34,892 nucleotides of DNA from Oikopleura dioica. Its lineage: Eukaryota; Animalia; Chordata. The position numbers were made by a program, and so were the translations under genes. Of the stretch, positions 7,025 to 34,892 are shown one piece after another (position 1 is the first letter of the stretch; each line of letters opens with the position of its first letter). The notes under the pieces are model-generated. The model was not told the DNA's origin. It ran no database searches and saw only the letters and a list, made by a program, of their open reading frames with translations. The stretch lies in assembly GCA_907165135.1 (NCBI GenBank), contig CAJRAX010000013.1, positions 1 through 34,892 on the forward strand, given 5' to 3'.

Positions 7025-7337
7025 TGGATGGAAACTGGACATTCGTCACGGTTCAGCTTTCAGTCGACAGAACTTATGTTTCATGAGAGGGTGGGTTGTG
7101 GAGATCAGCATTTCTGTCTTGTTCTGCCAGTCTCTGCAGCACGTCATGCTCTGCCTACGAAACTGATAACGGCCAAGGCCGCACCGTTCGTTCACTCACA
7201 GCTCACTTCTTACTTTCATAAAATCGAGAAATAAACACACTTTACTTGCTACAAAAACTCTTGACCTCGCTTATTGCAACAACGCCTTTCAACTACGACT
7301 ACTCTGCAGGAAGCTGCTGCCAGGCTAGCTCGTCTCA
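7025..7337 (+). repeat. Putative 3' LTR of E1 (313 bp, TG...CA)
   Basis: It contains ATCGAGAAATAAACACACTTTA (7223-7244), identical to the E2 LTR core. The TG at 7025 lies 198 nt upstream of that core, the same offset as in E2. It ends CTCA at 7337, directly followed by satellite. Only one copy is present, so the 5' boundary is inferred. Confidence 0.55.
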
Positions 7338-8016
7338 AACGCATCAAAAATTTTCGCGATTTTTATGAACTTAACATCGTCTAAAAACGCGAAAAAACGC
7401 ATCAAAAATTTTCGCGATTTTTATGAACTAAACATCGTCTAAAAACGCGAAAAAACGCATCAAAAAATTTTCGCGATTTTTTGAACCAAACATCGTCTAA
7501 AAACACGAAAAAACGCATCAAAAATTTTCGCGAATTTTATGAAATAAACATCGTCTAAAAACGCGAAAAAACGCATTAAAAAATTTTCGCGATTTTTATG
7601 AACTAAACATCGTCTAAAAACGCGAAAAAACGCATCAAAAAATTTTCGCGATTTTTTGAACCAAACATCGTCTAAAAACGCGAAAAAACGCATCAAAAAT
7701 TTTCGCGAATTTTATGAAATAAACATCGTCTAAAAACGCGAAAAAACGCATCAAAAAATTTTCGCTATTTTTATGAACTAAACATCGTCTAAAAACGCGA
7801 AAAAACGCATCAAAAAATTTTCGCGATTTTTATGAACTTAACATCGTCTAAAAACGCGAAAAAACGCATCAAAAAATTTAGCGATTTTTTGAACTAAGCA
7901 TCGTCTAAAAACGCGAAAAAACGCATCAAAAAATTTTCGCGATTTTTATGAACTAAACATTGTCTTAAAACGCGAAAAAACGCATCAAAAAATTTTCGCG
8001 ATTTTTATGAACTTAA
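7338..8016. repeat. 58-59 bp satellite, block 1 (~11-12 monomers)
   Basis: Consensus AAAAACGCGAAAAAACGCATCAAAAA(A)TTTTCGCGATTTTTATGAACT(A/T)AACATCGTCT. ATCGTCT occurs at 7376, 7434 and 7492. Confidence 0.99.
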
Positions 8017-8663
8017 GAAGGGGGTCGACGAGAATTTTTTCGCTTTTTCAAAATTTTGACAATATTTTTGGATTCCTTAATGGAAAAGGAGCATTTTTGG
8101 TTTCCAGCATTTTGCGCATTGATAAACATTTTTAGCAAAATTTTCGATTTTGTGTCTGGAATTCGAGGTTTAACGAAATTTGAAAGTTGGCTTTCTCACC
8201 CAAAAACAGTCTTTATCCGATTTTTTTACTAGATATTAATTAATAATGGTTTTTCTATCATTATAAGTAAAAAATAGCGAGTCTCCGCGAGTTTTGTAAA
8301 ACTCGCTGTAAAAATGAGCAAAAATGACGATTTTTAGGAAAATCGGATATTTTTAATCAACAGTAAAAAAATTTCAAGAGAAGCATCCCTTTTTTTATTG
8401 TCGCAGCTGTATTTTTAAGGGTTTGAACTTACTATTTACAGTATTTGATGGAGAAAAAATAATCCCGGTTTCGAGATTTTTTGGCTACGAGACACCCCCA
8501 CTTTGCCCTAATTTTTCAAGATTTTTCGAGAAAATTTTTTCTAGTTTTTGCCGCTGTATTTTTGAAACCCTTTTCTTTCCGCGTGAAAAGTCAGAATTTC
8601 CCTATCTAAGCAGTTTTTTTCGCATTTTTGGTTACAGAAATCCCGATTCTCGTCGACCTCCCC
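8017..8663. mobile_element. TTAA-specific MITE (Kolobok-like), 647 bp, inserted in the satellite
   Basis: The satellite's TTAA is duplicated (8013-8016 and 8664-8667). TIRs of ~18 bp: GAAGGGGGTCGACGAGAAT / GGGGAGGTCGACGAGAAT. Purine (RR) termini with a TTAA TSD fit Kolobok rather than piggyBac (CC termini). Removing it restores a perfect monomer. Confidence 0.85.
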
Positions 8664-14600: not shown

Positions 14601-17600
14601 AAAAACGCGAAAAAACGCATCAAAAAATTTCGCGATTTTTATGAACTTAACATCAACTAAAAACGCGAAAAAACGCATCAAAAATTTTTGCGAATTATAT
14701 GAACTTAACATCGTCTAAAAACGCGAAAAAACGCATCAAAAATTTTCGCGATTTTGATGAACTTAACATCGTCTAAAAGCGCGAAAAAACGCATCAAAAA
14801 TTTTCGCGAATTTTATGAACTTAACATCGTCTAAAAACGCGAAAAAATGCATCCAAAAATTTCCGCGATTTTTAAGAACTAAACATCGTCTAAAAACGCG
14901 AAAAACGCATCAAAAAATTTTCACGATTTTTATGAACTTGACATCGTCTAAAAACGCGAAAAAACGCATCAAAAATTTTCGCGATTTTTATGAACTAAAC
15001 ATCGTCTAAAAACGCGAAAAAACGCATCAAAAATTTTTCGCGATTTTTATGAACTAAACATCGTCTAAAAACGCGAAAAAATGCATCAAAAATTTTCGCG
15101 ATTTTTATAAACTTAACATCGTCTAAAAACGCGAAAAAACGCATCGAAAAATTTCGCGATTTTTATGAACTTAACATCAACTCAAAACGCGAAAAACGCA
15201 TCAAAAATTTTCGCGAATTTTATGAACTTAACATCGTCTAAAAACGCGAAAAAAAGCATCCAAAAATTTCCGCGATTTTTAAGAACTAAACATCGTCTAA
15301 AAACGCGAAAAAACGCATCAAAAATTTTCACGATTTTCATGAACTTGACATCGTCTAAAAACGCGAAAAAACGCATCAAAAAATTTTCGCGATTTTTATG
15401 AACTAAACATCTTCTAAAAACGCGAAAAAACGCATCAAAAATTTTTCGCGATTTTTATGAACTAAACATCGTCTAAAAACGCGAAAAAACGCATCAAAAA
15501 TTTTTCGCGATTTTTATGAACTAAACATCGTCTAAAAACGCGAAAAAATGCATCAAAAATTTTCGCGATTTTTATAAACTTAACATCGTCTAAAAACGCG
15601 AAAAAACGCATCAAAAAATTTCGCGATTTTTATGAACTTAACATCAACTAAAAACGCGAAAAAACGCATCAAAAAATTTTTGCGAATTTTATGAACTTAA
15701 CATCGTCTAAAAACGCGAAAAAACGCATCAAAAATTTTCGCGATTTTTATGAACTAAACATCGTCTAAAAACGCGAAAAAACGCATCAAAAATTTTTGCG
15801 AATTTTATGAACTTAACATCGTCTAAAAACGCGAAAAAACGCATCAAAAAATTTTCGCGAATTTTATGAACTAAACATCGTCTAAAAACGCGAAAAAATG
15901 CATCCAAAAATTTCCGCGATTTTTAAGAACTAAACATCGTCTAAAAACGCGAAAAAACGCATCAAAAAATTTTCACGATTTTTATGAACTTGACATCGTC
16001 TAAAAACGCGAAAAAACGCATCAAAAATTTTCGCGATTTTTATGAACTAAACATCGTCTAAAAACGCGAAAAAACGCATCAAAAATTTTTGCGAATTTTA
16101 TGAACTAAACATCGTCTAAAAACGCGAAAAAATGCATCAAAAAATTTTCGCGATTTTTATGAACTTAACATCAACTCAAAACGCGAAAAAACGCATCAAA
16201 AAATTTTCGCGAATTTTATGAACTTAACATCGTCTAAAAACGCGAAAAAACGCATCAAAAAATTTTCGCGAATTTTATGAACTAAACATCGTCTAAAAAC
16301 GCGAAAAAATGCACCCAAAAATTTCCGCGATTTTTAAGAACTAAACATCGTCTAAAAACGCGAAAAAACGCATCAAAAAATTTTCTCGATTTTTATAAAC
16401 TTGACATCGTCTAAAAACGCGAAAAAACGCATCAAAAAATTTTCGCGATTTTTATGAACTAAACATCGTCTAAAAACGCGAAAAAACGCATCAAAAAATT
16501 TTTCGCGATTTTTATGAACTAAACATCGTCTAAAAACGCGAAAAAACGCATCAAAAATTTTTCGCGATTTTTATGAACTAAACATCGTCTAAAAACGCGA
16601 AAAAATGCATCAAAAATTTTCGCGATTTTTATAAACTTAACATCGTCTAAAAACGCGAAAAAACGCATCGAAAAAATTTCGCGATTTTTATGAACTTAAC
16701 ATCAACTAAAAACGCGAAAAAACGCATCAAAAATTTTTGCGAATTTTATGAACTTAACATCGTCTAAAAACGCGAAAAAACGCATCAAAAAATTTTCGCG
16801 AATTTCATGAATTTTACATCGTCTAAAAACGCGAAAAAACGCATCAAAAATTTCCGCGATTTTTATGAACTAAACATCGTCTAAAAACGCGAAAAAACGC
16901 ATCAAAAATTTTTACGATTTTTATGAACTAAACATCGTCTAAAAACGCGAAAAAATGCATCAAAAATTTTCGCGATTTTTATGAACTAAACATCGTCTAA
17001 AAACGCGAAAAAACGCATCAAAAATTTCCGCGATTTTTATGAACTAAACATCGTCTTAAAACGCGAAAAAATGCATCAAAAATTTTCGCGATTTTTATGA
17101 ACTAAACATCGTCTAATAACGCAAAAAGTGCATCAAAAAATTTTCGCGATTTTTATGAACCAAACATCGTCTAAAAACGCGAAAAAACGCATCAAAAATT
17201 TTCGCGATATTTTTGAACTAAACATTGTCTAAAAACGCGAAAAAACGCATCAAAAAATTTTCGCTATTTTTATGAACTTAACATCGTCTAAAAACGCAAA
17301 AACGCATCAAAAATTTTCGCGATTTTTATGAACTAAACATCGTCTAAAAACGCGAAAAAACGCATAAAAAATTTTCGCGATTTTGATGAACTAAACATCG
17401 TCTAAAAGCGCGAAAAAACGCATCAAAAATTTTCGCGATTTTTATGAACTAAACATCGTCTAAAAACGCGAAAAAATGCATCAAAAATTTTCGCGATTTT
17501 TATGATTTTAACATCGTCTAAAAACGCGAAAAAACGCATCAAAAATTTTCGCGATTTTTATGAACTAAACATCGTCTTAAAACGCGAAAAAACGCATCAA

Positions 17601-20600
17601 AAATTTTCGCGATTTTTATAAACCAAACATCGTCTAAAAACGCGAAAAAACGCATCAAAAATTTTCGCGATTTTTATGAACTAAACATCGTCTAAAAACG
17701 CGAAAAACGCATCAAAAATTTTCGCTATTTTTATGAACTAAACATCGTCTAAAAACGCAAAAAAACGCATTAAAAAATTTTCGCAATTTTTATGAACTAA
17801 ACATCGTCTAAAAACGCGAAAAAACGCATCAAAAATTTTCGCGATTTTTATGAACTAAACATCGTCTAAAAACGCGAAAAAATGCATCAAATAATTTTCG
17901 CGATTTTTATGAACTTAACATCGTCTAAAAACGCGAAAAAACGCATCAAAAAATTTCGCGATTTTTATGAATTAAACATCAACTAAAAACGCGAAAAAAC
18001 GCATCAAAAAATTTTTGCGAATTATATGAACTTAACATCGTCTAAAAACGCGAAAAAACGCATCAAAAATTTTCGCGATTTTGATGAACTTAACATCGTC
18101 TAAAAGCGCGAAAAAACGCATCAAAAATTTTCGCGAATTTTATGAACTTGACATCGTCTAAAAACGCGAAAAAATGCATCAAAAATTTCCGCGATTTTTA
18201 AGAACTAAACATCGTCTAAAAACGCGAAAAAACGCATCAAAAAATTTTCACGATTTTTATGAACTTGACATCGTCTAAAAACGCGAAAAAACGCATCGAA
18301 AAAATTTCGCGATTTTTATGAACTTAACATCAACTAAAAACGCGAAAAAACGCATCAAAAATTTTTGCGAATTTTATGAACTTAACATCGTCTAAAAACG
18401 CGAAAAAACGCATCAAAAAATTTTCGCGAATTTTATGAACTAAACATCGTCTAAAAACGCGAAAAAATGCATCCAAAAATTTCCGCGATTTTTAAGAACT
18501 AAACATCGTCTAAAAACGCGAAAAAACGCATCAAAAAATTTTCACGATTTTCATGAACTTGACATCGTCTAAAAACGCGAAAAAACGCATCAAAAAATTT
18601 TCGCGACTTTTATGAACTAAACATCGTCTAAAAACGCGAAAAAACGCATCAAAAAATTTTTCGCGATTTTTATGAACTTAACATCGTCTAAAAACGCGAA
18701 AAAACGCATCAAAAATTTTTCGCGATTTTTATGAACTAAACATCGTCTAAAAACGCGAAAAAATGCATCAAAAATTTTCGCGATTTTTATAAACTTAACA
18801 TCGTCTAAAAACGCGAAAAAACGCATCAAAAAATTTCGCGATTTTTATGAACTTAACATCAACTAAAAACGCGAAAAAACGCATCAAAAAATTTTTGCGA
18901 ATTTTATGAACTTAACATCGTCTAAAAACGCGAAAAAACGCATCAAAAATTTTCGCGATTTTTATGAACTAAACATCGTCTAAAAACGCGAAAAAACGCA
19001 TCAAAAATTTTTGCGAATTTTATGAACTTAACATCAACTAAAAACGCGAAAAAACGCATCAAAAAATTTTTGCGAATTTTATGAACTTAACATCGTCTAA
19101 AAACGCGAAAAAACGCATCAAAAAATTTTCGCGATTTTTATGAACTAAACATCGTCTAAAAACGCGAAAAAACGCATCGAAAAAATTTCGCGATTTTTAT
19201 GAACTTAACATCAACTAAAAACGCGAAAAAACGCATCAAAAAATTTTTGCGAATTTTATGAACTTAACATCAACTAAAAACGCGAAAAAACGCATCAAAA
19301 AATTTTTGCGAATTTTATGAACTTAACATCAACTAAAAACGCGAAAAAACGCATCAAAAAATTTTTGCGAATTTTATGAACTTAACATCGTCTAAAAACG
19401 CGAAAAAACGCATCAAAAAATTTCGCGATTTTTATGAACTTAACATCAACTAAAAACGCGAAAAAACGCATCAAAAAATTTTTGCGAATTTTATGAACTT
19501 AACATCAACTAAAAACGCGAAAAAACGCATCAAAAATTTTTGCGAATTTTATGAACTTAACATCGTCTAAAAACGCGAAAAAACGCATCAAAAAATTTTC
19601 GCGAATTTTATGAACTAAACATCGTCTAAAAACGCGAAAAAATGCATCCAAAAATTTCCGCGATTTTTAAGAACTAAACATCGTCTAAAAACGCGAAAAA
19701 ACGCATCAAAAAATTTTCACGATTTTTATGAACTTGACATCGTCTAAAAACGCGAAAAAACGCATCAAAAAATTTTCGCGATTTTTATGAACTAAACATC
19801 GTCTAAAAACGCGAAAAAACGCATCAAAAAATTTTTGCGAATTTTATGAACTAAACATCGTCTAAAAACGCGAAAAAATGCATCAAAAAATTTTCGCGAT
19901 TTTTATGAACTTAACATCAACTCAAAACGCGAAAAAACGCATCAAAAATTTTCGCGAATTTTATGAACTTAACATCGTCTAAAAACGCGAAAAAACGCAT
20001 CAAAAAATTTTCGCGAATTTTATGAACTAAACATCGTCTAAAAACGCGAAAAAATGCACCCAAAAATTTCCGCGATTTTTAAGAACTAAACATCGTCTAA
20101 AAACGCGAAAAAACGCATCAAAAAATTTTCTCGATTTTTATAAACTTGACATCGTCTAAAAACGCGAAAAAACGCATCAAAAATTTTCGCGATTTTTATG
20201 AACTAAACATCGTCTAAAAACGCGAAAAAACGCATCAAAAATTTTTCGCGATTTTTATGAACTAAACATCGTCTAAAAACGCGAAAAAACGCATCAAAAA
20301 TTTTCGCGATTTTTATGAACTAAACATCGTCTAAAAACGCGAAAAAATGCATCAAAAAATTTTCGCGATTTTTATAAACTTAACATCGTCTAAAAACGCG
20401 AAAAAACGCATCGAAAAAATTTCGCGATTTTTATGAACTTAACATCAACTAAAAACGCGAAAAAACGCATCAAAAATTTTTGCGAATTTTATGAACTTAA
20501 CATCGTCTAAAAACGCGAAAAAACGCATCAAAAAATTTTCGCGAATTTCATGAATTTTACATCGTCTAAAAACGCGAAAAAACGCATCAAAAATTTCCGC

Positions 20601-23525
20601 GATTTTTATGAACTAAACATCGTCTAAAAACGCGAAAAAACGCATCAAAAATTTTTACGATTTTTATGAACTAAACATCGTCTAAAAACGCGAAAAATGC
20701 ATCAAAAATTTTCGCGATTTTTATGAACTAAACATCGTCTAAAAACGCGAAAAAACGCATCCAAAAATTTCCGCGATTTTTATGAACTAAACATCGTCTA
20801 AAAACGCGAAAAAATGCATCAAAAATTTTCGCGATTTTTATGAACTAAACATCGTCTAATAACGCGAAAAAGTGCATCAAAAAATTTTCGCGATTTTTAT
20901 GAACCAAACATCGTCGAAAAACGCGAAAAAACGCATCAAAAATTTTCGCGATATTTTTGAACTAAACATTGTCTAAAAACGCGAAAAAACGCATCAAAAA
21001 ATTTTCGCTATTTTTATGAACTTAACATCGTCTAAAAACGCAAAAACGCATCAAAAATTTTCGCGATTTTTATGAACTAAACATCGTCTAAAAACGCGAA
21101 AAAACCCATAAAAAATTTTCGCGATTTTGATGAACTAAACATCGTCTAAAAGCGCGAAAAAACGCATCAAAAAATTTTCGCGATTTTTATGAACTAAACA
21201 TCGTCTAAAAACGCGAAAAAATGCATCAAAAAATTTTCGCGATTTTTATGATTTTAACATCGTCTAAAAACGCGAAAAAACGCATCAAAAAATTTTCAAG
21301 ATTTTTATGAACTAAACATCGTCTTAAAACGCGAAAAAACGCATCAAAAAATTTTCGCGATTTTTATAAACCAAACATCGTCTAAAAACGCGAAAAAACG
21401 CATCAAAAATTTTCGCGATTTTTATGAACTAAACATCGTCTAAAAACGCGAAAAACGCATCAAAAAATTTTCGCTATTTTTATGAACTAAACATCGTCTA
21501 AAAACGCGAAAAAACGCATCAAAAAATTTTCGCAATTTTTATGAACTAAACATCGTCTAAAAACGCGAAAAAACGCATCAAAAAATTTTCGCGATTTTTA
21601 TGAACTAAACATCGTCTAAAAACGCGAAAAAATGCATCAAATAATTTTCGCGATTTTTATGAACTTAACATCGTCTAAAAACGCGAAAAAACGCATCAAA
21701 AAATTTCGCGATTTTTATGAATTAAACATCAACTAAAAACGCGAAAAAACGCATCAAAAAATTTTTGCGAATTATATGAACTTAACATCGTCTAAAAACG
21801 CGAAAAAACGCATCAAAAATTTTCGCGATTTTGATGAACTTAACATCGTCTAAAAGCGCGAAAAAACGCATCAAAAAATTTTCGCGAATTTTATGAACTT
21901 GACATCGTCTAAAAACGCGAAAAATGCATCCAAAAATTTCCGCGATTTTTAAGAACTAAACATCGTCTAAAAACGCGAAAAAACGCATCAAAAATTTTCA
22001 CGATTTTTATGAACTAAACATCGTCTAAAAACGCGAAAAAATGCATCAAAAATTTTCGCGATTTTTATAAACTAAACATCGTCTAAAAACGCGAAAAAAT
22101 GCATCAAAAATTTTCGCGATTTTTATAAACTTAACATCGTCTAAAAACGCGAAAAAACGCATAAAAAAATTTCGCGATTTTTATGAACTTAACATCAACT
22201 CAAAACGCGAAATAACGCATCAAAAATTTTTGCGAATTTTATGAACTTAACATCGTCTAAAAACGCGAAAAAACGCATCAAAAATTTTCGCGAATTTCAT
22301 GAATTATACATCGTCTAAAAACGCGAGAAAACGCATCCAAAAATTTCTGCGATTTTTATGAACTAAACATCGTCTAAAAACGCGAAAAAACGCATCAAAA
22401 ATTTTTACGATTTTTATGAACAAAACATCGTCTAATAACGCGAAAAAACGCATCAAAAAATTTTCGCGATTTTTATGAACCAAACATCGTCGAAAAACGC
22501 GAAAAAACGCATCAAAAATTTTCGCGATTTTTTTGAACTAAACATTGTCTAAAAACGCGAAAAAACGCATCAAAAATTTTCGCTATTTTTATGAACTTAA
22601 CATCGTCTAAAAACGCAAAAAAACGCATCAAAAAATTTTCGCTATTTTTATGAACTTAACATCGTCTTAAAACGCGAAAAAACGAATCAAAAATTTTCGC
22701 GATTTTTATGAACTAAACATCGTCTTAAAACGCGAAAAAACGCATCAAAAATTTTCGCGATTTTTATAAACCAAACATCGTCTAAAAACGCGAAAAAACG
22801 CATCAAAAATTTTCGCGATTTTTATGAACTAAACATCGTCTAAAAACGCGAAAAACGCATCAAAAAATTTTCGCTATTTTTATGAACTAAACATCGTCTA
22901 AAAACGCGAAAAAACGCATTAAAAAATTTTCGCGATTTTTATGAACTAAACATCGTCTAAAAACGCGAAAAAATGCATCAAATAATTTTCGCGATTTTTA
23001 TGAACTTTACATCGTCTAAAAACGCGAAAAAACGCATCAAAAAATTTCGCGATTTTTATGAACTTAACATCAACTAAAAACGCGAAAAAACGCATCAAAA
23101 AATTTTTGCGAATTATATGAACTTAACATCGTCTAAAAACGCGAAAAAACGCATCAAAAATTTTCGCGATTTTGATAAACTTAACATCGTCTAAAAGCGC
23201 GAAAAAACCCATAAAAATTTTCGCGAATTTTATGAACTAAACATCGTCTAAAAACGCGAAAAATGCATCCAAAAATTTCCGCGATTTTTAAGAACTAAAC
23301 ATCGTCTAAAAACGCGAAAAAACGCATCAAAAATTTTCACGATTTTTATGAACTTGACATCGTCTAAAAACGCGAAAAAACGCATCAAAAAATTACGCGA
23401 TTTTATGAACTAATCATCGTCTTAAAACGCGAAAAAACGCATTAAAAAATTTTCACGATTTTTATGATTTTAACATCGTCTAAAAACGCGAAAAAACTCA
23501 TCAAAAAATTTTCGCGATTTTTATG
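8664..23525. repeat. 58-59 bp satellite, block 2 (~14.9 kb, ~255 monomers) with higher-order structure
   Basis: Uninterrupted head-to-tail monomers, with variant monomers recurring in an ordered series. Confidence 0.99.
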
Positions 23526-23825
23526 TGCAAAGACGCTGAGAGACTCCTGGATTGCTGCGTAGTTGCTGTAGAATAGATGAACTCGGGGCCAGTAGTAAAG
23601 CAGGATAAAGTGTGTTTATTTCTCGATATTGTGTTTTTAAGACTGTGTGTGAAGTGAACAGAAAGAGGTTGAGCTGCTTGCTTATCAGTGTAGGCGCGCG
23701 GCTCCGAGACGGTAGAATGCTTTCTGGAAGTGCTGACATGCAACAACCAGAAGCAATCCACGAAATAAAGACTCTCACAACCATCCTCCCTTCAAGTTTT
23801 TGATGTTAAAGATTATCCAACCCCA
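23526..23825 (-). repeat. E2 3' LTR
   Basis: Minus strand TGGGGTTGGA...TCTTTGCA, with AATAAA inside the ATCGAGAAATAAACACAC core (plus 23610-23627). Confidence 0.92.
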
Positions 23826-24211
23826 AGTTGTGTCCAGATTGATAAATGCCTAACCCATCCCAAGCAAAGCAAAGTCGTAGCATATCTTCCAAAGCCAATT
23901 TGATAATGATCCATCCAATCACGTCCAGATCGCAGAAATAAGTCCAAAAATAGAAAGCAGCCAGATAAATTCCACAAAACCCCAACCATTAATTTTTACC
24001 CCTTAGGTTATTTGTCTCGATTTCCGTCTCCCATTTTCCATATATTTGAAGTACATGATTTTGATTTCCTGACTATCCCCACCCCTATTCCAGAAGAAAA
24101 TAGAAGCCCCCATCAACTTTTACTTTTTAAATTATAATTCAGGAATCCTTATTTTATTCTCATCTTCTTTAAATTCATTTTTCCCTTTCCCCTCATGAAA
24201 TTCATTTTTAT

Positions 24212-25785
24212 TTATGAATTGTCCCCATCTTCCCCAATATCAGAGCTATCCAGAATGTTTTGTGCAAGTTGCACAATCTCCAACGGTTTCTTTCCCTCAG
24301 ATCCCATTCGATAGATAATCTCATTCGAGATTGACTTTGGTAATTTTGATTCAAACTCAACGAGTGTCAAGCGCTCAATTGTATCTTCCCATAAATCCCC
24401 ATCCGGTAAATTTTTGCTCACTAGCATCACAAGATTACGAAGCTCTTCAAATTGCTCCCTGAGCTGTTTATCCCGTGTAATCTTGTATTTAGAAATTTCT
24501 TGTTTTATAAATGCCCGATTGTAATTCAAGATGTCGAGTAAACGTTTGAACACGTCTTCCTCAGACGGATACATAATTCCCTCGATTCCCTTGACAACCA
24601 ATGATTGATAGCGATTCCCGATTGCTGAAATGACGAGTGCGAGCCGATCTTGTCGCGATTGAATATCTTGCAGATCCAGCAAAAATTTAACGTTCTTAAA
24701 CCAAGCGTAAACATCGGTGAATTCCCTGAGCCCCCTTTTTCAAATAATATTGGCAACTTAATTTTATGCATTCTCGGTCTCCCAAGCGAGCCTTGATTGT
24801 CATTGAAATGGACAAAATGGTCATTTACCCGTGGTTGCTGCCCTCCAAGGTCCTCGTTTGAAATTTCTGCCTGATTTCTCATAGAGTTAAGCCCGATCCC
24901 CATGTTCAGATTTAGGGTATTCGCCTCCCCATCAACTCGTCCCGAATTTCCGATTCTTGTGAAAGCATTTCGATACCCAGATAGCCTTTCATCCATTTTT
25001 TCATTCGCAAACTTCAAAAGCTCCCTCTCCAACCTGTCTGCTTCGGCAAATTTTCTTTCAAGTCCCATTATAAGTCCCCGATTAACCTGGTTGTCAGTGA
25101 TGCTTGCCTTTAGTTGACTAAGCATAGTTTTGCTTGACTCGCTCAAATATAATTGTTCTTGTCCATCTTGGACAATTTCACCCTCGACTCCCGTTTCAGT
25201 ATCATTTTCTCCCGACTTAAGCCCATCACCTTCAGCCTCCGCTTCCCCCTCTTTATTTTTGCCCATTTTATCCCCGACTCTCTGGTTCTTTTCCATGAAA
25301 ATCCCCACCTTGCTTCTTTCCTCAAGATTTTTCATCCTTTCCAAAAATTTTTTCCCCTCAAAGATGTACTTTTCATACCCCTTCCCATTCGAAGCGTAAA
25401 ATTCTGCGAGGATTATCTGTGATTCCTCATTTGAAGTCCCATATTTCCCGTTTTTTATTCCTTCCGCATCATAACGAAAAAGTTCCGATCCTTCCTTTTG
25501 TGCAAACTTTACCTTAGCGTCATTCAAATCATAAATGGTAATATGTCCCCTTTCCTCCTCAAATTTAGTCAAACTATTGATTGGAATAAGTAGTGCCCTT
25601 CTGTACTGATCCTCGATGAGTGTTATTTTGAAAATTTCTCCCAACCCCAATTCCTTTAGATTTTTAATTAACTCCTCCTTTTTCATCTGATAATACCCCG
25701 TAACCCTATGCATTTTCCCTAACCATTTCAAATAATCAATTGTTGCCGTCTCCATCCGAATGCATCTCTTGACAATTACCGCCAT
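24212..25785 (-). CDS. gag: Gag-like protein (~520 aa) with N-terminal Rho-N/HeH-like module and C-terminal capsid-like domain; one frameshift near 24731-24741
   Basis: ORFs 24526-25785 and 24212-24682 fuse if one base is added in the A/G homopolymer run at ~24731-24741. The join gives KIKLPILFEK(R)GLREFTDVYAWFKNVKFLLDLQDIQSRQDRLALVISAIG...VEFESKLPKSISNEII...PLEIVQLAQNI, which follows the Ty3/gypsy capsid pattern (LP.F...DV..W, F...LP..I, ..A..I). No CCHC knuckle was seen. Confidence 0.7.
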
Positions 25786-26539
25786 CTTAATAGAAATAAA
25801 AATATCATTCTTACTATCCCCATTTTTAATTCAACCCTCAACCCTTACTACTGACCCTGATCATCCCTCCTGAATTTTTAAAAATCCTTCTTCCTGATTG
25901 TTTTTAAAATATTCTTCCGAAATAATATTTATTGTTAAACTCGTATTAAAATGAAACTAAATCAAAACCGCCGGTAGATAATTGCGCAAGTTTACGTTTG
26001 GTCTTGATCTATTCATCGCATCCTTATTTTGGTCTTTCATTTGTGCTTTTATATCTTTCCCGAAAATTTATAAAAATATCTATTTAAAAGGTTTAAGTTT
26101 ATCCTAGAAAAATATTTATGTTGTATCACCCTTCCATAATTTCTTAATTTTCGTTCTTGCGTCCCCCTTATTAACGTGCGCGTTTTCAACGACTTGAGAA
26201 TGATAAAAATATTTATTTATAAATCCCTTAATAATTATAAATTTTCCAACCCTTAATTTGATGTGAATTAATTAGCTTTCAATAGAATCTTTCAAAAATA
26301 ATCCCTTTTACCCCGCATGTTCAAATTTCTTTCCCTATCTTTAAACGCGTAATTTCTAGCGGCATTAAAAAAATTCATGATTTTAGTCCCCTTTTATATC
26401 CCTTTATTTAATTTTTCTTTACTCATATTTCGTGCGCTTTTAGGCGGCCTTTGAAAAATAGATAATTTTGATGAAAAGTTTTTCCCCCAATTTTATTAAA
26501 ATTTCCCGAATTTGCCATTTTAACCCCATTTAATAAAAT

Positions 26540-26572
<33 letters not shown>

Positions 26573-27230
26573 GTTATTATAATTATTATTATTATTATTT
26601 CAACCCTTTAACTTTTGTTTCCATTTTAAAATTCCGCGTCAGATTCATATTCATATCCCGCCTACGCATCCCCGTTTAGTCAATTGTCTGTTCCCCTTAT
26701 CAATTTTGTTGCATGGGAAAACTCATATTCCTCATGACGTCTTTATCTTCCCACCCAAGAATGTTCCTACTTATGCAAATTTACCCCATAATCACGAAAA
26801 TTTTGTAATTTTATTTCTATCCCCCGGTGCCAAGTTTTGGGCTTGAATACGAAATATCGTAAAACAAATAATAAAAATTTCTTTTCTATAAAATTTTTCC
26901 CCGGTCTTCCTTTTTTATCTTATTTAATTTTTTATCTTAATAATTATTTTCTTATAAATTTACCCCTTACTTCCTAAATTGATTCTCTTTTGAAATTTTA
27001 CCCCATAAATTTTATAAACCCTTAATAATAAAAACACAAATGAAAAAACTCAAAATAACGCATTTTTTCTCCCTAAAAAATGATTGATAATGGCCATTAA
27101 ATTCATCCTCATCCTTTTTTATTATTTATAAAATCATCCTCGCGATTTTTTTAAAAATAATATCTATCCTTACTATCCTAACTATAAAATTTAATTTCTA
27201 AATTCCGAAAGCATGGATTCTAAAACTTAC
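25786..27230 (-). other. Predicted 1445-nt leader intron of E2
   Basis: Donor CAA|GTAAGT (27230-27225) lies directly after the PBS. Acceptor ATTTTTATTTCTATTAAG|ATG places AG (25787-25786) immediately before the gag start codon. The intervening DNA is very AT-rich with no long ORF. Confidence 0.55.
26543..26599. repeat. (ATT)n microsatellite, ~19 units, slightly interrupted
   Basis: Read directly; it lies inside the E2 leader. Confidence 0.95.
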
Positions 27231-27231
27231 T

Positions 27232-27239
27232 TGTCACCA
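27232..27239 (-). promoter_or_regulatory. Primer-binding-site-like TGGTGACA
   Basis: It starts 2 nt after the CA end of the 5' LTR. TGGTGAC matches the first 7 nt of the tRNA-Trp-type PBS (TGGTGACCCC...) and then diverges, so primer identity is uncertain. Confidence 0.55.
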
Positions 27240-27241
27240 GT

Positions 27242-27541
27242 TGCAAAGACGCTGAGAGACTCCTGGATTGCTGCGTAGTTGCTGTAGAATAGATGAACTC
27301 GGGGCCAGTAGTAAAGCAGGATAAAGTGTGTTTATTTCTCGATATTGTGTTTTTTAAGACTGTGTGTGAAGTGAACAGAAAGAGGTTGAGCTGCTTGCTT
27401 ATCAGTGTAGGCGCGCGGCTCCGAGACGGTAGAATGCTTTCTGGAAGTGCTGACATGCAACAACCAGAAGCAATCCACGAAATAAAGACTCTCACAACCA
27501 TCCTCCCTTCAATTTTTGATGTTAAAGATTATCCAACCCCA
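27242..27541 (-). repeat. E2 5' LTR
   Basis: Identical to 23526-23825 except for one extra T in GTGTTTTTTAAG and one missing G in TTCAA(G)TTTTT. Confidence 0.92.
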
Positions 27542-30167
27542 ACAAAACGCATCGAAAAAATTTCGCGATTTTTATGAACTTAACATCAACTAAAAACGCG
27601 AAAAAACGCATCAAAAAATTTTTGCGAATTTTATGAACTTAACATCGTCTAAAAACGCGAAAAAACGCATCAAAAAATTTTCGCGAATTTCATGAATTTT
27701 ACATCGTCTAAAAACGCGAAAAAACGCATCCAAAAATTTCCGCGATTTTTATGAACTAAACATCGTCTAAAAACGCGAAAAAACGCATCAAAAAATTTTC
27801 ACGATTTTTATGAACTTAACATCGTCTAAAAACGCGAAAAAACGCATCAAAAAATTTTCGCGATTTTTATGAACTAAACATCGTCTTAAAACGCGAAAAA
27901 ACGCATTAAAAATTTTCACGATTTTTATGAACTTAACATCGTCTAAAAACGCGAAAAAACTCATCAAAGAATTTTCGCGATTTTTATGAAATAAACATCG
28001 TCTAAAAACGCGAAAAAACGCATCAAAAATTTTACGCGATTTTTATGAACTAAACATCGTCTAAAAACGCGAAAAAATGCATCAAAAAATTTTCGCGATT
28101 TTTATGAACTAAACATCGTCTAAAAACGCGAAAAAACGCATCAAAAATTTTCGCGATTTTTATGAACTTAACATCGTCTAAAAACGCGAAAAAACGCATC
28201 AAAAAATTTTCGCGAATTTTATGAACTTATACATCGTCTAAAAACGCGAAAAAACGCATCCAAAAATTTCCGCGATTTTTATGAACTAAACATCGTCTAA
28301 AAACGCGAAAAAACGCATCAAAAATTTTTACGATTTTTATGAACAAAACATCGTCTAAAAACGCGAAAAAACGCATCAAAAATTTTCGCGATTTTTATGA
28401 ACCAAACATCGTTGAAAAACGCGAAAAAACGCATCAAAAATTTTCGCGATTTTTATGAACTAAACATCGTCTAAAAACGCGAAAAAACGCATCAAAAAAT
28501 TTTCGCTATTTTTATAAACTTAACATCGTCTAAAAACGCGAAAAAACGCATCAAAAAATTTTCGCGATTTTTATGAACTTAACATCGTCTAAAAACGCGA
28601 AAAAACGCATCAAAAAATTTTCGCGATTTTTATGAACTAAACATCGTCTAAAAACGCGAAAAAACGCATCGAAAAATTTTCGCGATTTTTATGAACTAAA
28701 CATCGTCTTAAAACGCGAAAAAACGCATCAAAAAATTTTCGCGATTTTTATAAACATAACATCGTCTAAAAACGCGAAAAAACGCATCAAAAATTTTCGC
28801 GATTTTTATGAACTTAAACATCGTCTAAAAACGCGAAAAACGCATCAAAAATTTTCGCGATTTTTATGAACTAAACATCGTCTAAAAACGCGAAAAAACG
28901 CATTAAAAAATTTTCGCGATTTTTATGAACTTAACATCGTCTAAAAACGCGAAAAAACGCATCAAAAAATTACGCGATTTTATGAACTAATCATCGTCTT
29001 AAAACGCGAAAAAACGCATTAAAAAATTTTCACGATTTTTATGAACTTAACATCGTCTAAAAACGCGAAAAAACGCATCAAAAAATTTTCGCGATTTTTA
29101 TGATTTTAACATCGTCTAAAAACGCGAAAAACGCATCAAAAAATTTTCGCGATTTTTATGAACTAAACATCGTCTAAAAACGCGAAAAAACGCATCAAAA
29201 AATTTTCGCGATTTTTAAGAACTAAACATCGTCTAAAAACGCGAAAAAACGCATCAAAAAATTTTCACGATTTTTATGAACTTGACATCGTCTAAAAACG
29301 CGAAAAAACGCATCAAAAAATTACGCGATTTTATGAACTAAACATCGTCTTAAAACGCGAAAAAACGCATTAAAAAATTTTCGCGATTTTTATGATTTTA
29401 ACATCGTCTAAAAACGCGAAAAAACTCATCAAAAAATTTTCGCGATTTTTATGAACTTAACATCGTCTAAAAACGCGAAAAAACGCATCAAAAATTTTCG
29501 CGATTTTTATGAACTTAACATCGTCTAAAAACGCGAAAAAACGCATCAAAAAATTTTCGCGATTTTTATGAACTAAACATCGTCTAAAAACGCGAAAAAA
29601 CGCATTTAAAAATTTTCGCGATTTTTATGAACTAAACATCGTCTAAAAACGCGAAAAAATGCATCAAAAAATTTTCGCGATTTTTATAAACTTAACATCG
29701 TCTAAAAACGCGTAAAAACGCATCGAAAAAATTTCGCGATTTTTATGAACTTAACATCAACTAAAAACGCGAAAAAACGCATCAAAAAATTTTTGCGAAT
29801 TTTATGAACTTAACATCGTCTAAAAACGCGAAAAAACGCATCAAAAAATTTTCGCGAATTTCATGAATTTTACATCGTCTAAAAACGCGAAAAAACGCAT
29901 CCAAAAATTTCCGCGATTTTTATGAACTAAACATCGTCTAAAAACGCGAAAAAACGCATCAAAAAATTTTCACGATTTTTATGAACTTAACATCGTCTAA
30001 AAACGCGAAAAAACGCATCAAAAAATTTTCGCGATTTTTATGAACTAATCATCGTCTTAAAACGCGAAAAAACGCATTAAAAAATTTTCACGATTTTTAT
30101 GATTTTAACATCGTCTAAAAACGCGAAAAAACTCATCAAAGAATTTTCGCGATTTTTATGAAATAAA
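27542..30167. repeat. 58-59 bp satellite, block 3 (~45 monomers)
   Basis: Same monomer and same orientation as blocks 1 and 2. Confidence 0.99.
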
Positions 30168-30576
30168 TGATACGGAAGCGGCTGTCCTGCAAGAATTTTG
30201 CTCGATCTCTAACTCTAGAATGCCAAGCCAAAACAACGAGAATCAAATTTAAAATTTGCGTGGTTTTATTTGTGATTTGAATGACGGAAAAAGGCGCGAC
30301 GCGGGGTTAAATAGCAGCGAGATTCAATCAGTGTTTTTGAACAAGCGGTTGTTTTTGAAAAACAATTTTTCTTTCGAAAACAAGGAAGAGAGCCCGTGGC
30401 TTCTTTTAGCGGTTTTTCTTGCGGGAAATCCTTTCGGATCGATTTCTTTTCGGAAGAGGAGCTGGTCGAACTTGCCAAGCAAGTTATTTTCAAAGGTTTC
30501 GGGAGCCGGCGCCGCGCGTGACGAGATAAAACGCAAATTAATTATTTTTTCATAATAAAAGCAGAAAATAATAACA
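30168..30576 (-). repeat. Putative 3' LTR of E3
   Basis: The CA end at 30168 is well supported by the satellite junction. Minus-strand TATTTAA (30307-30313) is followed by AATAAA (30264-30269). The TG start at 30576 (TGTTAT...GTATCA) is a guess, since there is no second copy and no clean PPT. Confidence 0.4.
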
Positions 30577-30967
30577 GCCACTTAAACTTCTCACTATGTG
30601 ACCGTAGAAGTGACTGTTAATTATGATTGAAATAAATAAAGGATGAGAAAAGTAAAAGAATATATACAAAATTTTAACAAATAAATTGAATAAAATTTGG
30701 TCAGGATTTTATAAAATAAATTTATCAAAATTGAAATCATAGAAGAAGCAAATTCCAAGGAACATACCCGGGGAAGTTACTGTCGCGGTTCGCACCGTAT
30801 CTTCTCTTACGGATGAGCTAGTTTGCGACAAGCGGACGCACTGACAGAGAGTTTGTCCGACCCCACGGCACCGAGATGATACGACGGTTTATCTGCTCGT
30901 TGGAGTTGTTGTTGTTGAAGAAGGTGTTGACGGCTGTTCTGTTGTAGACTTTGAATCGTATGTACTG

Positions 30968-31410
30968 TCAATAATCGAACTTTAAAATCGCAAAGCAATG
31001 ATAAGAAATATCAATAAATAGATTAAACATGCGGTTTTGCGAATTGCATATTTTTGATGAATTGACGTCAGATCGCATTATGATGAGAGCATATGAGCAT
31101 TCCAATGATAAAAGTAGAAATCGTAAAGAGATGACATGATGATAAGACAATTTTGGGTCAATCTGGCTCGTAAAAACTGACCATCTTTTCATTTTGAGAA
31201 GAATATCGTGAAATGATTTTTGAAAAAATGTCTGATCAATTTGGTGATACCAAGCTGACAAGACAAATTTAAACCAACGTAGAACCGAATTGACGTAAAT
31301 ACTTGGCCGTGAAATAAATTTTTGTGTTGCTTGAGGCGTTGTTCCCTAAGGATATCACTGTGACCTTCCATGGGTCGCAAACGAGCATCTTTTTCGCCTT
31401 TCTTTTTCAT
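30968..31410 (-). other. Short overlapping ORFs downstream of pol (73 aa at 31189-31410; ~127 open codons ending at 30968)
   Basis: The 73-aa ORF starts in an ATGA overlap with the upstream stop (31407-31410). A second frame is open from ~31350 to 30968. There is no recognisable motif, so they may be non-coding. Confidence 0.25.
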
Positions 31411-31613
31411 ATTTCAGTTTCAAAGTCTGGAAGAAAAACAAGAACATTTTTTCGCATCGGATGATTTGGAAATTTTTTCAGCAATTCTGTTTCGATAGAT
31501 GCCTGTAAGATTGTCTTTGAACAGTTTTTAAATTTACAGGATAAATCATAAAAAGCGCAAACAGTCTTTAGCTCGGGGACAGTTAGTTCGTACAACGTTC
31601 GCTCTTTTGCACT
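31407..31613 (-). pseudogene. In-frame continuation of pol after a TAG: second SAP/HeH-like repeat
   Basis: The sequence reads CTT TAG AGT GCA AAA GAG CGA ACG TTG TAC GAA CTA ACT = L*SAKERTLYELTVPELKTVCAFYDL..., in the same frame as pol. It aligns with the last 55 aa of pol. Confidence 0.7.
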
Positions 31614-34600
31614 CTAAAGACCGCAAAAAAGAAGTTGTCCGTTTCTCGATTTACGCCAATTCGGATACTCTCTACGAATAGTTTCCTTCACTTTTATCTG
31701 AAGTTTCGCCCTTGATTCCTCGAGATCAAAGTCCTGATTCATTTTAAAAAGAATGAATAACAGAGAGTCTCTTGTTAATTCGTTCAGTTTGATAAATATG
31801 CCATTTTCAACATAGGTCTCCTCTATGTCGTCTGTATTTTTCCATTTATCATTTAGATGTTCGAAAAAGTCAAGATCATGATTTTCCATTTTAATTAAAA
31901 TTGACATGTTTTCCAAATTATTTTCAACTGTAAATTTAGCAATTTTTCGCTCGACAACGGAATCATCAGATCTTTCCCTTCTACGTTTTAGAGCAACTAA
32001 CGGATCAATTTCGGGCAATTTATCGTACGATGTCAAATTAACAGAGAGCTCAGAATCAGAACTTGATTTCTCGGAATCAAGCACAATGTCTGATCCATTT
32101 CCTACTTGATTCAAATCAGGTTGTTGATTTCGATAAATTTTTGGTAATGGCATTTCTATCAAAAGAGTCGATGAGGATGAAAAATTATCTGGTTCTGAAG
32201 AAGAACTAGACCGCTCCCGATAAGGTTCCGATTGTAAAGACTGATCTGACATTTCGGAGGATAAAGATTCATGCGCTATTTCCGATTCTTTTTCTGTAGA
32301 GAAATTTTTCGCAAACCGACCAAGGAAATCCCTCGAAAAAAGACAATCTTCGGAGAAAAATTCGAAAAGCTCGAGATCATTTTCTTGTACTTTTGTCACA
32401 ATCTTGGGATATTTTTCAGCATCGTTATTCGTCTCATCAGTTAAATTCCGCTGAGAATAACTTTTTATATGCTCTGCATGACGCCGAAATTCGTCCTTAT
32501 CATTTTTAACAGTGTACCACAGGCCACTCGGGGATTTAAACGTAACTTCATAAGGACCAATAAATGGAGGGAATTTTTCGCGGAAATTTTTGATAAGAAC
32601 TTTATCGCCTAAATTATATTCTTTGAACCGGGGATTATCAAATTTGTTCATTCTTTTTTGTTTTTCTTGTTCAATTTTTGCACGAATTTTCTCAAAATCA
32701 ACGTCGATTTTATCTCCGTATGTTCGCCAATAAGGGTCTTGAAAATGATGACTGCTTTTTATACCAGTTTCTACACAAAATGGGGTTGTTCCGAGTACTG
32801 TATGTAGACTACTGTTTATTTCGTGAACAATTTCAAACAGAAAAATATCCCAATTCACCCAATTTGAACGAGCCCTAAGCCTGGCTTTTATGGTTCTATT
32901 GACGTTTTCAACTTGCCCATTAGATTGGGGATGGCGCGGGGGAATATAATGCACACCAATTTTGTTTTCTTTCAAAAATTTTTCAATCAAAACGTGTTCC
33001 TTCGCGTTATCTAAAACCATATATTTTGGAAATTTTGGATTTCTAAATAATACGCTTCGAAACTTTTGCAGTAAATAATCCGATTTTTTGCAAGATAAGG
33101 GCTCCGCATAAACTTTTTTGCTGAAACCGTCAATAACCACCATTACATATTTATGACCAAAATCAGTTTCTTGAAGTGGGCCGATTAAATCGAAGTACAA
33201 AATTTCAAAAGGGCCGCTTGGTGTTTCAGATTTACCTAAGGGAGGTTTGTTAGGCTGTAAATTTGGTTTTGAAATTTGACATTTGTGACATGATTTAATA
33301 AAGCTCGCGACTGTGTTTTTTAATCCCGGCCAAAAATACTTTCTAGAAATTTTCTCGGCTGTTATATCGATTCCAAAATGAGAATGATCATGATATTCGC
33401 TGCAAATTGTCTCTGTCAAAGCCTCGGGGACGCAAAATCTTTTTTGATATGCTGGAGAGTTTATTGCTAGTTCCCCGGACTCAAGAATTTCAAGGTCAGG
33501 TCTACGTAAAAAATATGGGTAAAGCTCACTAGCTGGGTTATTTGGCCATCTATCAATTTTAACGAAACGTCTTACTTGTGATAATACTCGGTCAGATTTT
33601 TGAAACTCAACAAATGATTCAGGGGTAAACTTTATTTGATTGATTGAACAATTTAATGTATTACGACTAAGGCAATCACTTATTTTCATTTGATGAGTTT
33701 TTCTTTGTTCAATTCGAAATGAAAATCCCTGAAGCTCCGTAAACCATCTTTGAATTTTTAAATTACTTGTCTTGAAGGATTGAGCGTATTTTACGCAAGA
33801 ATTATCAGTAATCCAAAGAAAATCGACATAAGCAAGATAAGCTCTCCATCGTTCCATACATGTTTTCCCACTATATAGCTCTTTTTCCAATGTCCCGTAT
33901 TTTTGTTGTGCCGGCGTAAAATTTAGCGAGTGGTAAGCTATCGGTTGCAAGCAATTATGCGAATGATGGTGATCTTTATTTCGCTCCGCGCAAAGATAAA
34001 GAACTCCACCAAGACTATGGTTGGATGCGTCAGTCTCAAGTACAAAAACACCGTTATTTAGTGGGGGGATTTTGAGCTCCAGAGTATTATGGCAGATGAT
34101 ACTTTTGAGCTTTTCGAGTGAAATCGTCGCCTCTTTTGTCCAACAAAATGAACCTCTGTACGTTTTTGAAATTTCCACTCCCAGGGGTGCAAAATTTTTA
34201 ATAAACTTTCTGTGCTGCGAAAGAAGTCCGAAAAGTGATTGTGCCTCCTCTCGGTTTCTTGGAATAGAAAGATTTTTAACCGCTTCGATCTTGTCCTGTG
34301 ATGGCCGTATTCTCCCGTTAAAAATTTCAAATCCCAAAATGCATGCTTTTCGCTCAAAAAAACTCGCTTTGTCAATATTTATCCGTAAATTATTTTGATC
34401 TAAAATTTGAAAAAATTTAGATAAATTGGCTAGGTGTTCCTCCTCTGTTCTTGAATGGACCACAAGATCGTCAAGATATGCGCAAATTTGAGTTTTTGGC
34501 GTGTCTCGTAAAATAACATCCATGCATTTTGCGAAATGAATAGGGGCATTTTTAAGACCCATGGGAAGCCTTTTCCAAGTAAATTGTCCGTCTTCAGTCG

Positions 34601-34892
34601 AAAAAGCTAGTTTTTCTCGCGATTTCTCATCCACGAGACACTGATGAAATCCTTTGCGCAAATCAACGCAAGAAAAAATAAGGCTATTTTCTAAAAACCC
34701 TAAAACGTCCTCAATTTGTTGCAGCGGATGATGCTGCTGAAGCGTAAATGAATTCAATTTCCTGTAATCTATACACAGTCTGAATGTACCGTTTCGTTTT
34801 CTTACGAGTAACGCGGGGCTATTATAGGGTGAATTTATTCGCATTATTATGTCTTGACCAAGGTAGGACGTAAGAGTCCCAGTCATTACTCC
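31614..34892 (-). CDS. pol: Pol polyprotein (RT, RNase H, integrase, long C-terminal extension); 5' end outside window
   Basis: RT: SPYNSP, RLCIDYRKLN, DLRKGFHQ, RLPMGLKNAP, YLDD (34467-34478). RNase H: LETDAS, EKEL, ITDN. Integrase: zinc finger HDHSH...CHKC, core DLIGP / DNAKE / PQSNGQVENVN, and GPY/F motif FIGPYEV. The frame is open to the window edge. Confidence 0.97.
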   Translation of the reverse strand, partial: GVMTGTLTSYLGQDIIMRINSPYNSPALLVRKRNGTFRLCIDYRKLNSFTLQQHHPLQQIEDVLGFLENSLIFSCVDLRKGFHQCLVDEKSREKLAFSTEDGQFTWKRLPMGLKNAPIHFAKCMDVILRDTPKTQICAYLDDLVVHSRTEEEHLANLSKFFQILDQNNLRINIDKASFFERKACILGFEIFNGRIRPSQDKIEAVKNLSIPRNREEAQSLFGLLSQHRKFIKNFAPLGVEISKTYRGSFCWTKEATISLEKLKSIICHNTLELKIPPLNNGVFVLETDASNHSLGGVLYLCAERNKDHHHSHNCLQPIAYHSLNFTPAQQKYGTLEKELYSGKTCMERWRAYLAYVDFLWITDNSCVKYAQSFKTSNLKIQRWFTELQGFSFRIEQRKTHQMKISDCLSRNTLNCSINQIKFTPESFVEFQKSDRVLSQVRRFVKIDRWPNNPASELYPYFLRRPDLEILESGELAINSPAYQKRFCVPEALTETICSEYHDHSHFGIDITAEKISRKYFWPGLKNTVASFIKSCHKCQISKPNLQPNKPPLGKSETPSGPFEILYFDLIGPLQETDFGHKYVMVVIDGFSKKVYAEPLSCKKSDYLLQKFRSVLFRNPKFPKYMVLDNAKEHVLIEKFLKENKIGVHYIPPRHPQSNGQVENVNRTIKARLRARSNWVNWDIFLFEIVHEINSSLHTVLGTTPFCVETGIKSSHHFQDPYWRTYGDKIDVDFEKIRAKIEQEKQKRMNKFDNPRFKEYNLGDKVLIKNFREKFPPFIGPYEVTFKSPSGLWYTVKNDKDEFRRHAEHIKSYSQRNLTDETNNDAEKYPKIVTKVQENDLELFEFFSEDCLFSRDFLGRFAKNFSTEKESEIAHESLSSEMSDQSLQSEPYRERSSSSSEPDNFSSSSTLLIEMPLPKIYRNQQPDLNQVGNGSDIVLDSEKSSSDSELSVNLTSYDKLPEIDPLVALKRRRERSDDSVVERKIAKFTVENNLENMSILIKMENHDLDFFEHLNDKWKNTDDIEETYVENGIFIKLNELTRDSLLFILFKMNQDFDLEESRAKLQIKVKETIRREYPNWRKSRNGQLLFCGL

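Follow-up and report, generated by a model that had tools for sequence, protein, structure and literature searches.

Two LTR elements with conserved accessory modules in a 58-bp satellite of Oikopleura dioica: is recognition of the satellite needed to explain their position?

The contig CAJRAX010000013.1 of Oikopleura dioica (assembly GCA_907165135.1) was analyzed over positions 1 to 34,892, and this stretch of AT-rich DNA is called the window in the following. It contains two long terminal repeat (LTR) elements, E2 and E3, that are associated with arrays of a 58-bp satellite, and each of them encodes short modules that are not a usual part of Gag or Pol. The locus thus raises the question whether the modules guide the elements to the satellite. 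This had been proposed in a first-pass annotation, which had noticed that E2 and E3 are embedded in or abut the array, and that extra two-helix modules are found at the N-terminus of the E2 Gag and, twice, at the C-terminus of the E3 integrase. Both of these observations held: the two 3' LTR ends are exact against the satellite, and all three modules are present and are conserved in relatives. As to the question itself, it is considered moderately probable that E2 and E3 are unrelated, recent LTR insertions in the AT-rich segment of the monomer, that they carry conserved accessory modules, and that their position is explained without recognition of the satellite. A targeting of the satellite by the modules is only weakly suggested by the sequence.

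E3 is located at the right end of the window on the minus strand. Its pol open reading frame (ORF; 31614..34886, minus strand), which runs off the window end, encodes reverse transcriptase (RT), RNase H, integrase and an acidic, serine-rich linker. The Pfam matches were RVT_1 with 108.6 bits, RT_RNaseH with 72 bits and Integrase_H2C2 with 68.4 bits, and the match to rve had 30.7 bits, just below the cut-off of 32.6. The domain order is RT, RNase H, integrase, i.e., the order that defines Ty3/gypsy elements, and on this order E3 is classified as a Ty3/gypsy LTR retrotransposon of a family that is otherwise known from metagenomes only. The E3 pol and the pol of the metagenome element L002 share 57% identity in an alignment of 1127 columns. 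With the default composition-based statistics blastp and tblastn gave only the C-terminal part of the alignment between the two pol proteins, and the alignment over 1127 columns was obtained with the adjustment switched off. Relatives of the element proteins of the window were found in metagenomes only, and they include a marine contig of Tara Oceans.

The 3' LTR of E3 (30168..31357, minus strand) has a length of 1190 bp and the ends TGATAT...GTATCA, and it contains a TATA-like box as well as an AATAAA near its 3' end. Its borders follow from motifs shared without variation by nine related loci, namely GGTCAYAG/TGATAC after pol and GTATCA/TGGTGAACAC before gag. TGATAC...GTATCA is the perfect 6-bp terminal inverted repeat of a canonical LTR, and the primer-binding site TGGTGAACAC directly adjoins it. 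Because the LTR ends are fixed by motifs that are invariant in the relatives, the junction between E3 and the satellite, which starts at 30167, is formed by the authentic end of the LTR. The window stops at 34892, before the 5' LTR is reached. Two other views of this region were rejected. First, the junction could have been a truncated 5' leader with TGGCA..TTCTAG as primer-binding site; the invariant pair of TGATAC and GTATCA+TGGTGAACAC speaks against this, and the TGGCA motif varies by insertions and deletions among the relatives and thus cannot be the primer-binding site of E3. Second, an LTR start just after the purine tract, with TGCTCG...CGAGCA as terminal repeat, had no support from the relative L002. 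A peculiarity of the family (L002-L010; in the window 30168-30175) is that the gag start codon takes its first base from the end of the LTR and the other two from the beginning of the primer-binding site. It therefore spans the border of the two, and the invariant TGGTGAACAC encodes the N-terminal sequence MVNT.

The conserved C-terminal region of the E3 pol (31617..32040, minus strand) was delimited by alignment, structure prediction and substitution rates. It comprises a basic patch, short helices and a strand, and module 1 (31617..31820, minus strand), which was defined by alignment and forms a strand-helix-loop-helix-strand unit in the model of a relative. In the window copy an in-frame TAG stop (31614..31616, minus strand) is situated between modules 1 and 2, and module 2, together with a conserved tail that ends with ETEI (31410..31613, minus strand), follows in the pol frame beyond the stop. 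In the relatives the frame is open at this position: both repeats are present in one open frame in eleven of them (28-62% identity), and most of these end with ETEI. The C-terminal ETEI-COOH (window 31410-31421; P0002-P0009) looks like a class I PDZ-binding motif, a hint of a partner protein of a metazoan host. Throughout the family the integrase is separated from the compact domain of about 135 residues by a long linker, which is acidic and rich in serine, and by a basic patch with many lysines and arginines. Module 1 has a basic isoelectric point of about 9.5-10 in most members, module 2 is near neutral, and the domain as a whole is mildly basic.

The ratio of nonsynonymous to synonymous substitution rates (dN/dS) was 0.06-0.15 for the last 135 codons across related elements, and dS was unsaturated. 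For the upstream linker the ratio was 0.15-0.22, with a dN three to four times that of the domain. The C-terminal domain of E3 was thereby shown to be conserved and under purifying selection. The structure was predicted with AlphaFold2 (AF2) for residues 1262-1471 of the intact relative P0004, using 13 sequences. The predicted local distance difference test score (pLDDT) was 78.9, with values of 88-96 in the core, and the predicted template modelling score was 0.75. In the model each of the two repeats consists of a strand, a helix of 10 residues, a loop of 10 residues, a helix of 15 residues and a second strand.

The first-pass annotation had regarded both E3 modules as helix-extension-helix (HeH) folds of the SAP type. 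For repeat 2 this stood, if weakly, and for repeat 1 no sequence relation was found that would carry it. The top weak Pfam match of module 2 was SAP, with 14.4 bits versus a cut-off of 23.9 bits (E 0.029 for the window copy; E 0.03 in two of the 13 sequences), and the hhalign comparison with Rho_N repeats gave 78.5%. For module 1 the comparison with Rho_N/SAP repeats gave only 0.2%; its relation to module 2 was weak (36%), and the likeness of the two is one of modelled shape. In local Foldseek searches the whole-domain model was aligned with 2do1 (root-mean-square deviation 1.6 Å over 43 columns), 2kve (2.0 Å over 44 columns) and 1jjr, with a range of 1.6-4.0 Å over 35-44 columns for the three, all at E >1 and with the aligned repeat not specified. 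Several viral SAP or Rho_N proteins were among the top 50 matches, all with E >0.25, and no match to the PDB and BFVD had E <0.25. Sequence searches against the PDB gave nothing useful, and a search with the domain alone for stand-alone relatives yielded only fragments of the same family. Module 2 shares with the SAP domain (PF02037; SAF-A/B, Acinus, PIAS, Ku70, Hcc-1) and with the SAP-like C-terminus of MANF the pattern of a leucine-spaced helix, an extended loop and a second helix. It differs in a longer loop that lacks the usual glycine, and in the framing of the helices by beta strands that join the two repeats. Several weak and concordant lines, all below threshold, thus suggest that repeat 2 is SAP/HeH-like. 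As the first-pass annotation had assumed, E3 is free of a chromodomain: searches up to an E of 1 gave no chromo-family match in the E3 pol of the window or in 13 C-terminal sequences, so that the mark of the chromoviruses is missing from them.

E2 is an LTR element at 23526-27542 on the minus strand. Its only gene encodes a Gag-like protein, and pol is missing. Its 3' LTR (23526..23826, minus strand) abuts the satellite directly with the end TTTGCA, as read from the sequence, and its 5' LTR (27242..27542, minus strand) adjoins a satellite flank that ends with GATGCGTTTTG(T). The two LTRs are 99.3% identical and enclose about 3.4 kb; E2 is a young, recently inserted element. The N-terminal part of the Gag-like ORF (24526..25785, minus strand) keeps the true frame as far as about 24730, and after a frameshift near 24700-24740 the C-terminal part continues in another frame (24212..24739, minus strand), as revealed by alignment with the homologues P0001 (49% identity) and P0013. 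The C-terminal part had a Pfam match to DUF7041 that was below the threshold (E 0.005). A putative primer-binding site that starts with TGGTGAC (27226..27239, minus strand) is located two bases after the 5' LTR. It agrees with that of E3 in the first six bases only (TGGTGA), and the LTR ends of the two elements differ. The Gag-like ORF is the only long ORF of E2, and the marine metagenome relative L011 likewise has no downstream pol. With two LTRs, a Gag-like ORF and no pol, E2 is assigned to the non-autonomous, Gag-only LTR elements of the TR-GAG type. The Gag-like protein has no CCHC zinc knuckle, in contrast to the Gag of the E3 family, which has two, and no relation was detected between its C-terminus and the Gag of the E3 family (hhalign 0.2%). 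A look-up of the exact protein encoded by the E2 Gag-like ORF of the window found nothing on record. The 1.45-kb AT-rich 5' region of E2 is free of ORFs and contains an (ATT)19 microsatellite (26543-26599).

The E2 module (25642..25752, minus strand) comprises residues 12-48 of the Gag-like protein, and it was recognized by translation, hhalign, a profile search and AlphaFold. The alignment of the E2-family N-termini matched ten Rho_N repeats in hhalign with 97.4%, an E of 1.3e-11 and 39% identity over 36 columns, and the module aligns with the GYY-x-MKK-x-EL core of these repeats. When 1.84 billion representatives were searched with a profile built from the window protein and P0001, four family members were retrieved, and in addition three proteins from outside of the family, each of which was matched two to four times. 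The best matches of these three proteins included query positions 12-52 and had E values of 8e-9, 4e-5 and 2e-4; all three carry Rho_N/SAP/HeH repeats in tandem, and their Pfam Rho_N matches had E values of 6e-30 to 4e-41. The first 50 residues of the window protein alone matched Pfam Rho_N with E 0.015 and 15.7 bits, under the cut-off of 24.9 bits. In the AlphaFold model of the E2 protein (six sequences) residues 11-50 form a strand-helix-loop-helix-strand unit with a pLDDT of 64-85. The overall pLDDT of 52 makes the model too weak for a fold search, and Foldseek gave no match to the PDB at E <0.25. The structure prediction and fold search that the first-pass annotation had proposed for the modules thus resulted in confident helix-loop-helix repeats for E3, and in no significant Foldseek match for the model of either element. 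The module lies within the N-terminal 150 residues or so, which are the best-conserved stretch of the protein.

On these sequence comparisons the E2 module is judged to be a genuine HeH, namely one of the Rho_N type, in agreement with the earlier assignment. It shares the GYY-x-MKK-x-EL core with the repeats of the tandem Rho_N/HeH proteins of viruses and microbes (PF07498, PF12949); unlike in those proteins, it is present in a single copy and between beta strands, within a conserved N-terminal domain that extends beyond the module and belongs to the Gag-like protein of a retrotransposon. Two of the tandem Rho_N-repeat proteins in the representative library, P0016 and P0018, have similar N- and C-terminal ends and a variable number of repeats between them. 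No relation could be detected between the E2 module and module 2 of E3 (hhalign 0.2%). The modules of both elements are conserved, and those of E3 are under purifying selection, and thus the elements need them.

What the modules do is the next step of the question. They may be accessory domains that bind nucleic acids or chromatin. The E3 domain would most likely tether the integration complex to some feature of chromatin or DNA, because of its position, the linker, the basic patch and the fold class, and in view of analogous modules at integrase C-termini such as chromodomains. Integrase C-terminal modules that act as chromatin tethers are the chromodomain, the targeting domain of Ty5 and the integrase tail of murine leukemia virus (MLV). 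The place of the E3 domain corresponds to that of the Sir4-binding motif in Ty5 and of the chromodomain in chromoviruses. With the chromoviruses and the centromeric CRM elements of plants E3 has in common that its Ty3/gypsy pol bears an accessory domain, conserved and under selection, which is attached to the extreme C-terminus of the integrase via a flexible linker, and that the element is located in a satellite array. The accessory domain of those elements is a chromodomain, in contrast to the tandem strand-helix-loop-helix-strand domain of E3, which has no Pfam family. For E2, the HeH would more likely bind nucleic acids within Gag, in place of the missing nucleocapsid function, or tether Gag to chromatin. 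Chromatin tethering through Gag is found with MLV p12 and with the chromatin-binding sequence of foamy-virus Gag, and by this likeness the E2 module could act in the pre-integration complex.

A different view is that the modules have nothing to do with the choice of the target: the E2 HeH would take over the role of the zinc knuckle as a binder of RNA or cDNA, or aid assembly, the E3 domain would serve nuclear import or contact a host protein, e.g., via ETEI, and insertions in the satellite would merely be tolerated. The difference between the knuckle-free E2 protein and the E3-family Gag with its two knuckles is in line with this, as is the Rho_N motif, which is part of the N-terminal domain of an RNA-binding protein (Pfam PF07498). 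The conservation of ETEI in most family members and the basic patch before the domain fit as well, and so does the presence of three different transposon types in the array. Nevertheless, in Ty3/gypsy elements as well as in retroviruses the accessory domains at the integrase C-terminus typically act as tethers to chromatin, and the SAP-like fold most often binds DNA, so that this view is regarded as possible, if on the unlikely side.

The position of the elements has to be judged from the satellite itself. The 58/59-bp satellite was detected with Tandem Repeats Finder (TRF) at 7337-8013, 8666-23525 and 27544-30162, and the right end of the last array was extended by eye to 30167. The largest array (8666..23525, 14.9 kb) has a period of 58 bp, 255 copies and 91% matches, and lies downstream of E2 with respect to the minus strand; the array at 27544..30167 is situated between E2 and E3. 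In the TRF consensus of the monomer A-tracts occur at a spacing of about 9-12 bp. A 26-mer of the satellite had 0 matches in the metagenome contigs, and the related E3 and E2 contigs that were retrieved have the length of the element, without flanking DNA or satellites.

The 3' flanks of E2 and E3 are alike over about 295 bp, with a single mismatch in the first 120 bp or so and 96.9% identity by BLAST. They contain a variant series of three monomers, called S-type here (23349..23525, minus strand, after the E2 3' LTR), which was recognized by counting rare variants; the rare variant GATGAG occurs 5 times and the common GATGCG 230 times. The earlier claim that both 3' ends follow the same uncommon series stood: an exact variant string of 98 bp has just two copies in the window, both at the 3' LTR junctions of E2 and E3. 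It needs some qualification. With at least 94% identity over three monomers, the S-type series was found at five sites (30160, 29453, 29102, 27988 and 23525), four of which are in the array between E2 and E3. The spacings are 707, 351 and 1114 bp, and all sites are in about 3 kb around the two elements; elsewhere in the array 8666-23525 and in the array 7337-8013 there was none. The S-type series that the flanks share is a local higher-order repeat. The two junctions are not identical, but 7 bp apart in monomer phase: E3 lies before TTTATTTCAT and E2 before CATAAAA.

Could the likeness of the flanks have arisen after insertion? An S-type block would then have been duplicated or moved to the end of an element when the array, or two E2 copies, underwent unequal exchange or recombination, and the coincidence would say nothing about integration. 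The E2 flanks are in agreement with such events. No target-site duplication was found around the E2 LTRs, since the 5' flank ends with TTTTG(T) and the 3' flank starts with CATAA; the satellite after the 3' LTR begins with CATAAAAATCG, and from one flank to the other the monomer register changes by about 24/34 bp. Therefore, at least one E2 junction was rearranged, and a recombination between two E2 copies is a possible cause. Furthermore, the S-type blocks have spacings of 351 and 707 bp, as local unequal exchange predicts, and the flanks of E2 and E3 cease to be mutual best matches at a distance of more than about 300 bp. On the other hand, both junctions are exact LTR ends, and the element sides of the junctions are unrelated, which rules out that a single duplication copied a junction. 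An origin of the identical flanks after insertion is thus considered unlikely.

The preferred reading, i.e., unrelated recent insertions without recognition of the satellite, would account for the position by three steps. E2 and E3 would sit in the most AT-rich segment of the 58-bp monomer through an ordinary preference for AT-rich targets, insertions in a repeat array would survive and hence be seen there, and the shared flanking series would reflect the local higher-order repeat. A third insertion allows a comparison. The miniature inverted-repeat transposable element (MITE) at 8014..8665 (652 bp; no strand assigned) lies inside the satellite and is flanked by TTAA; the flanks and the terminal inverted repeats (core GGTCGACGAGAAT) were read from the sequence. 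It is present in a single copy in the window and has no HeH module, and its TTAA belongs to the same AT-rich monomer segment that contains the 3' junctions of E2 and E3. This shared segment, the five local S-type series and the missing target-site duplication of E2 are points against a satellite-specific targeting.

Several observations weigh against the preferred reading. Both LTR elements of the window are found in the satellite; they share their orientation, their junctions differ by 7 bp in phase, and the same rare series adjoins both. By our own estimate this coincidence is unlikely under a global null, with a chance of about 0.003-0.013. The chance is about 0.003 if any array position is allowed, and it rises to about 0.08 with one preferred site per monomer in the local domain. 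The estimate is post hoc and includes two junctions, and as a sign of targeting the coincidence is suggestive, not demonstrative. Other points concern the modules: the SAP-likeness of E3 never reached a curated threshold, the label Gag for the E2 protein is based only on its place between the LTRs and the sub-threshold DUF7041 match, and the charge of the E2 module is near neutral and gives no pointer to DNA binding.

The same coincidence is the starting point for the targeting proposed at the outset, according to which the HeH/SAP modules would bind the A-tract-rich 58-bp satellite or one variant of its monomer and direct the integration of E2 and E3, a route to heterochromatin or the centromere without a chromodomain. 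Apart from the shared orientation, phase and series, the conservation of the modules and the selection on those of E3 are compatible with it, as are the location of the E3 domain at the integrase C-terminus, which is the usual place of targeting modules, the A-tracts at intervals of about 9-12 bp, and the lack of a chromodomain in E3. We hold it improbable, because its support consists of two insertions in one window, the shared series is a local higher-order repeat, a TTAA MITE without a module uses the same segment, E2 has flanks out of register, no target-site duplication, at least one rearranged junction and no integrase of its own, so that its choice of a site depends on a partner element, the modules of E2 and E3 are unrelated to each other, and SAP domains generally prefer AT-rich DNA or structure rather than a sequence. 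The more specific version, in which the E3 family would be tethered directly to bent, A-tract-rich satellite DNA via a tandem SAP-like integrase C-terminus and the co-resident Gag-only element via its Gag HeH, is likewise very doubtful.

Elements of both kinds have counterparts. Pairs of autonomous and non-autonomous centromeric LTR elements exist, such as Cereba and Quinta (PMC11302176). E2 resembles the TR-GAG and the Cereba/Quinta type in being Gag-only, and like these it must use the RT and integrase of a partner. SAP domains are known in Zisupton DNA transposons and in the Chlamys Penelope-like elements of Physarum (PMC8557442). In these cases, as in E3, a domain of the SAP type was recruited by a protein of a mobile element; the class of the element and the position within the protein are different. 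No report of SAP/HeH modules in the integrase or Gag of LTR retrotransposons was found in the searchable full-text literature.

The left part of the window contains further repeats. The left edge of the satellite at 7337 breaks at GATGCGTTT, followed by non-satellite DNA, and its monomer phase is that of the E2 5' flank (GATGCGTTTTG, 27543). In a second tandem array, at 2355-4148, a 163-bp unit (335-bp dimer) is repeated about 11 times with 93% matches. At 1194-1848 there is a long inverted repeat with arms of up to 90 nt, which are 94-100% complementary and consist of 16-bp tandem units, AGCTTTTCCAGCCATT; it has the look of a foldback element. The ORFs left of the arrays matched no Pfam family and an Rfam scan gave no match; all Pfam matches of the window belong to the elements.

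Taken together, the choice of heterochromatin or centromeres by LTR elements is understood mainly for chromodomain elements and a few yeast elements, and centromere-targeted LTR elements are known chiefly via a chromodomain or CR motifs. The E3 family offers a different candidate for a tether, an integrase-terminal domain that is conserved, selected, confidently modelled and unlike a chromodomain, and the HeH on a Gag-like protein is an unusual combination of domains. If either module were found to bind satellite DNA or a chromatin protein, this would define a new class of targeting modules and would bear on the co-evolution of satellites and transposons. If not, the modules would still mark two uncharacterised families of elements, which, judging from at least one Tara Oceans contig, are apparently marine.

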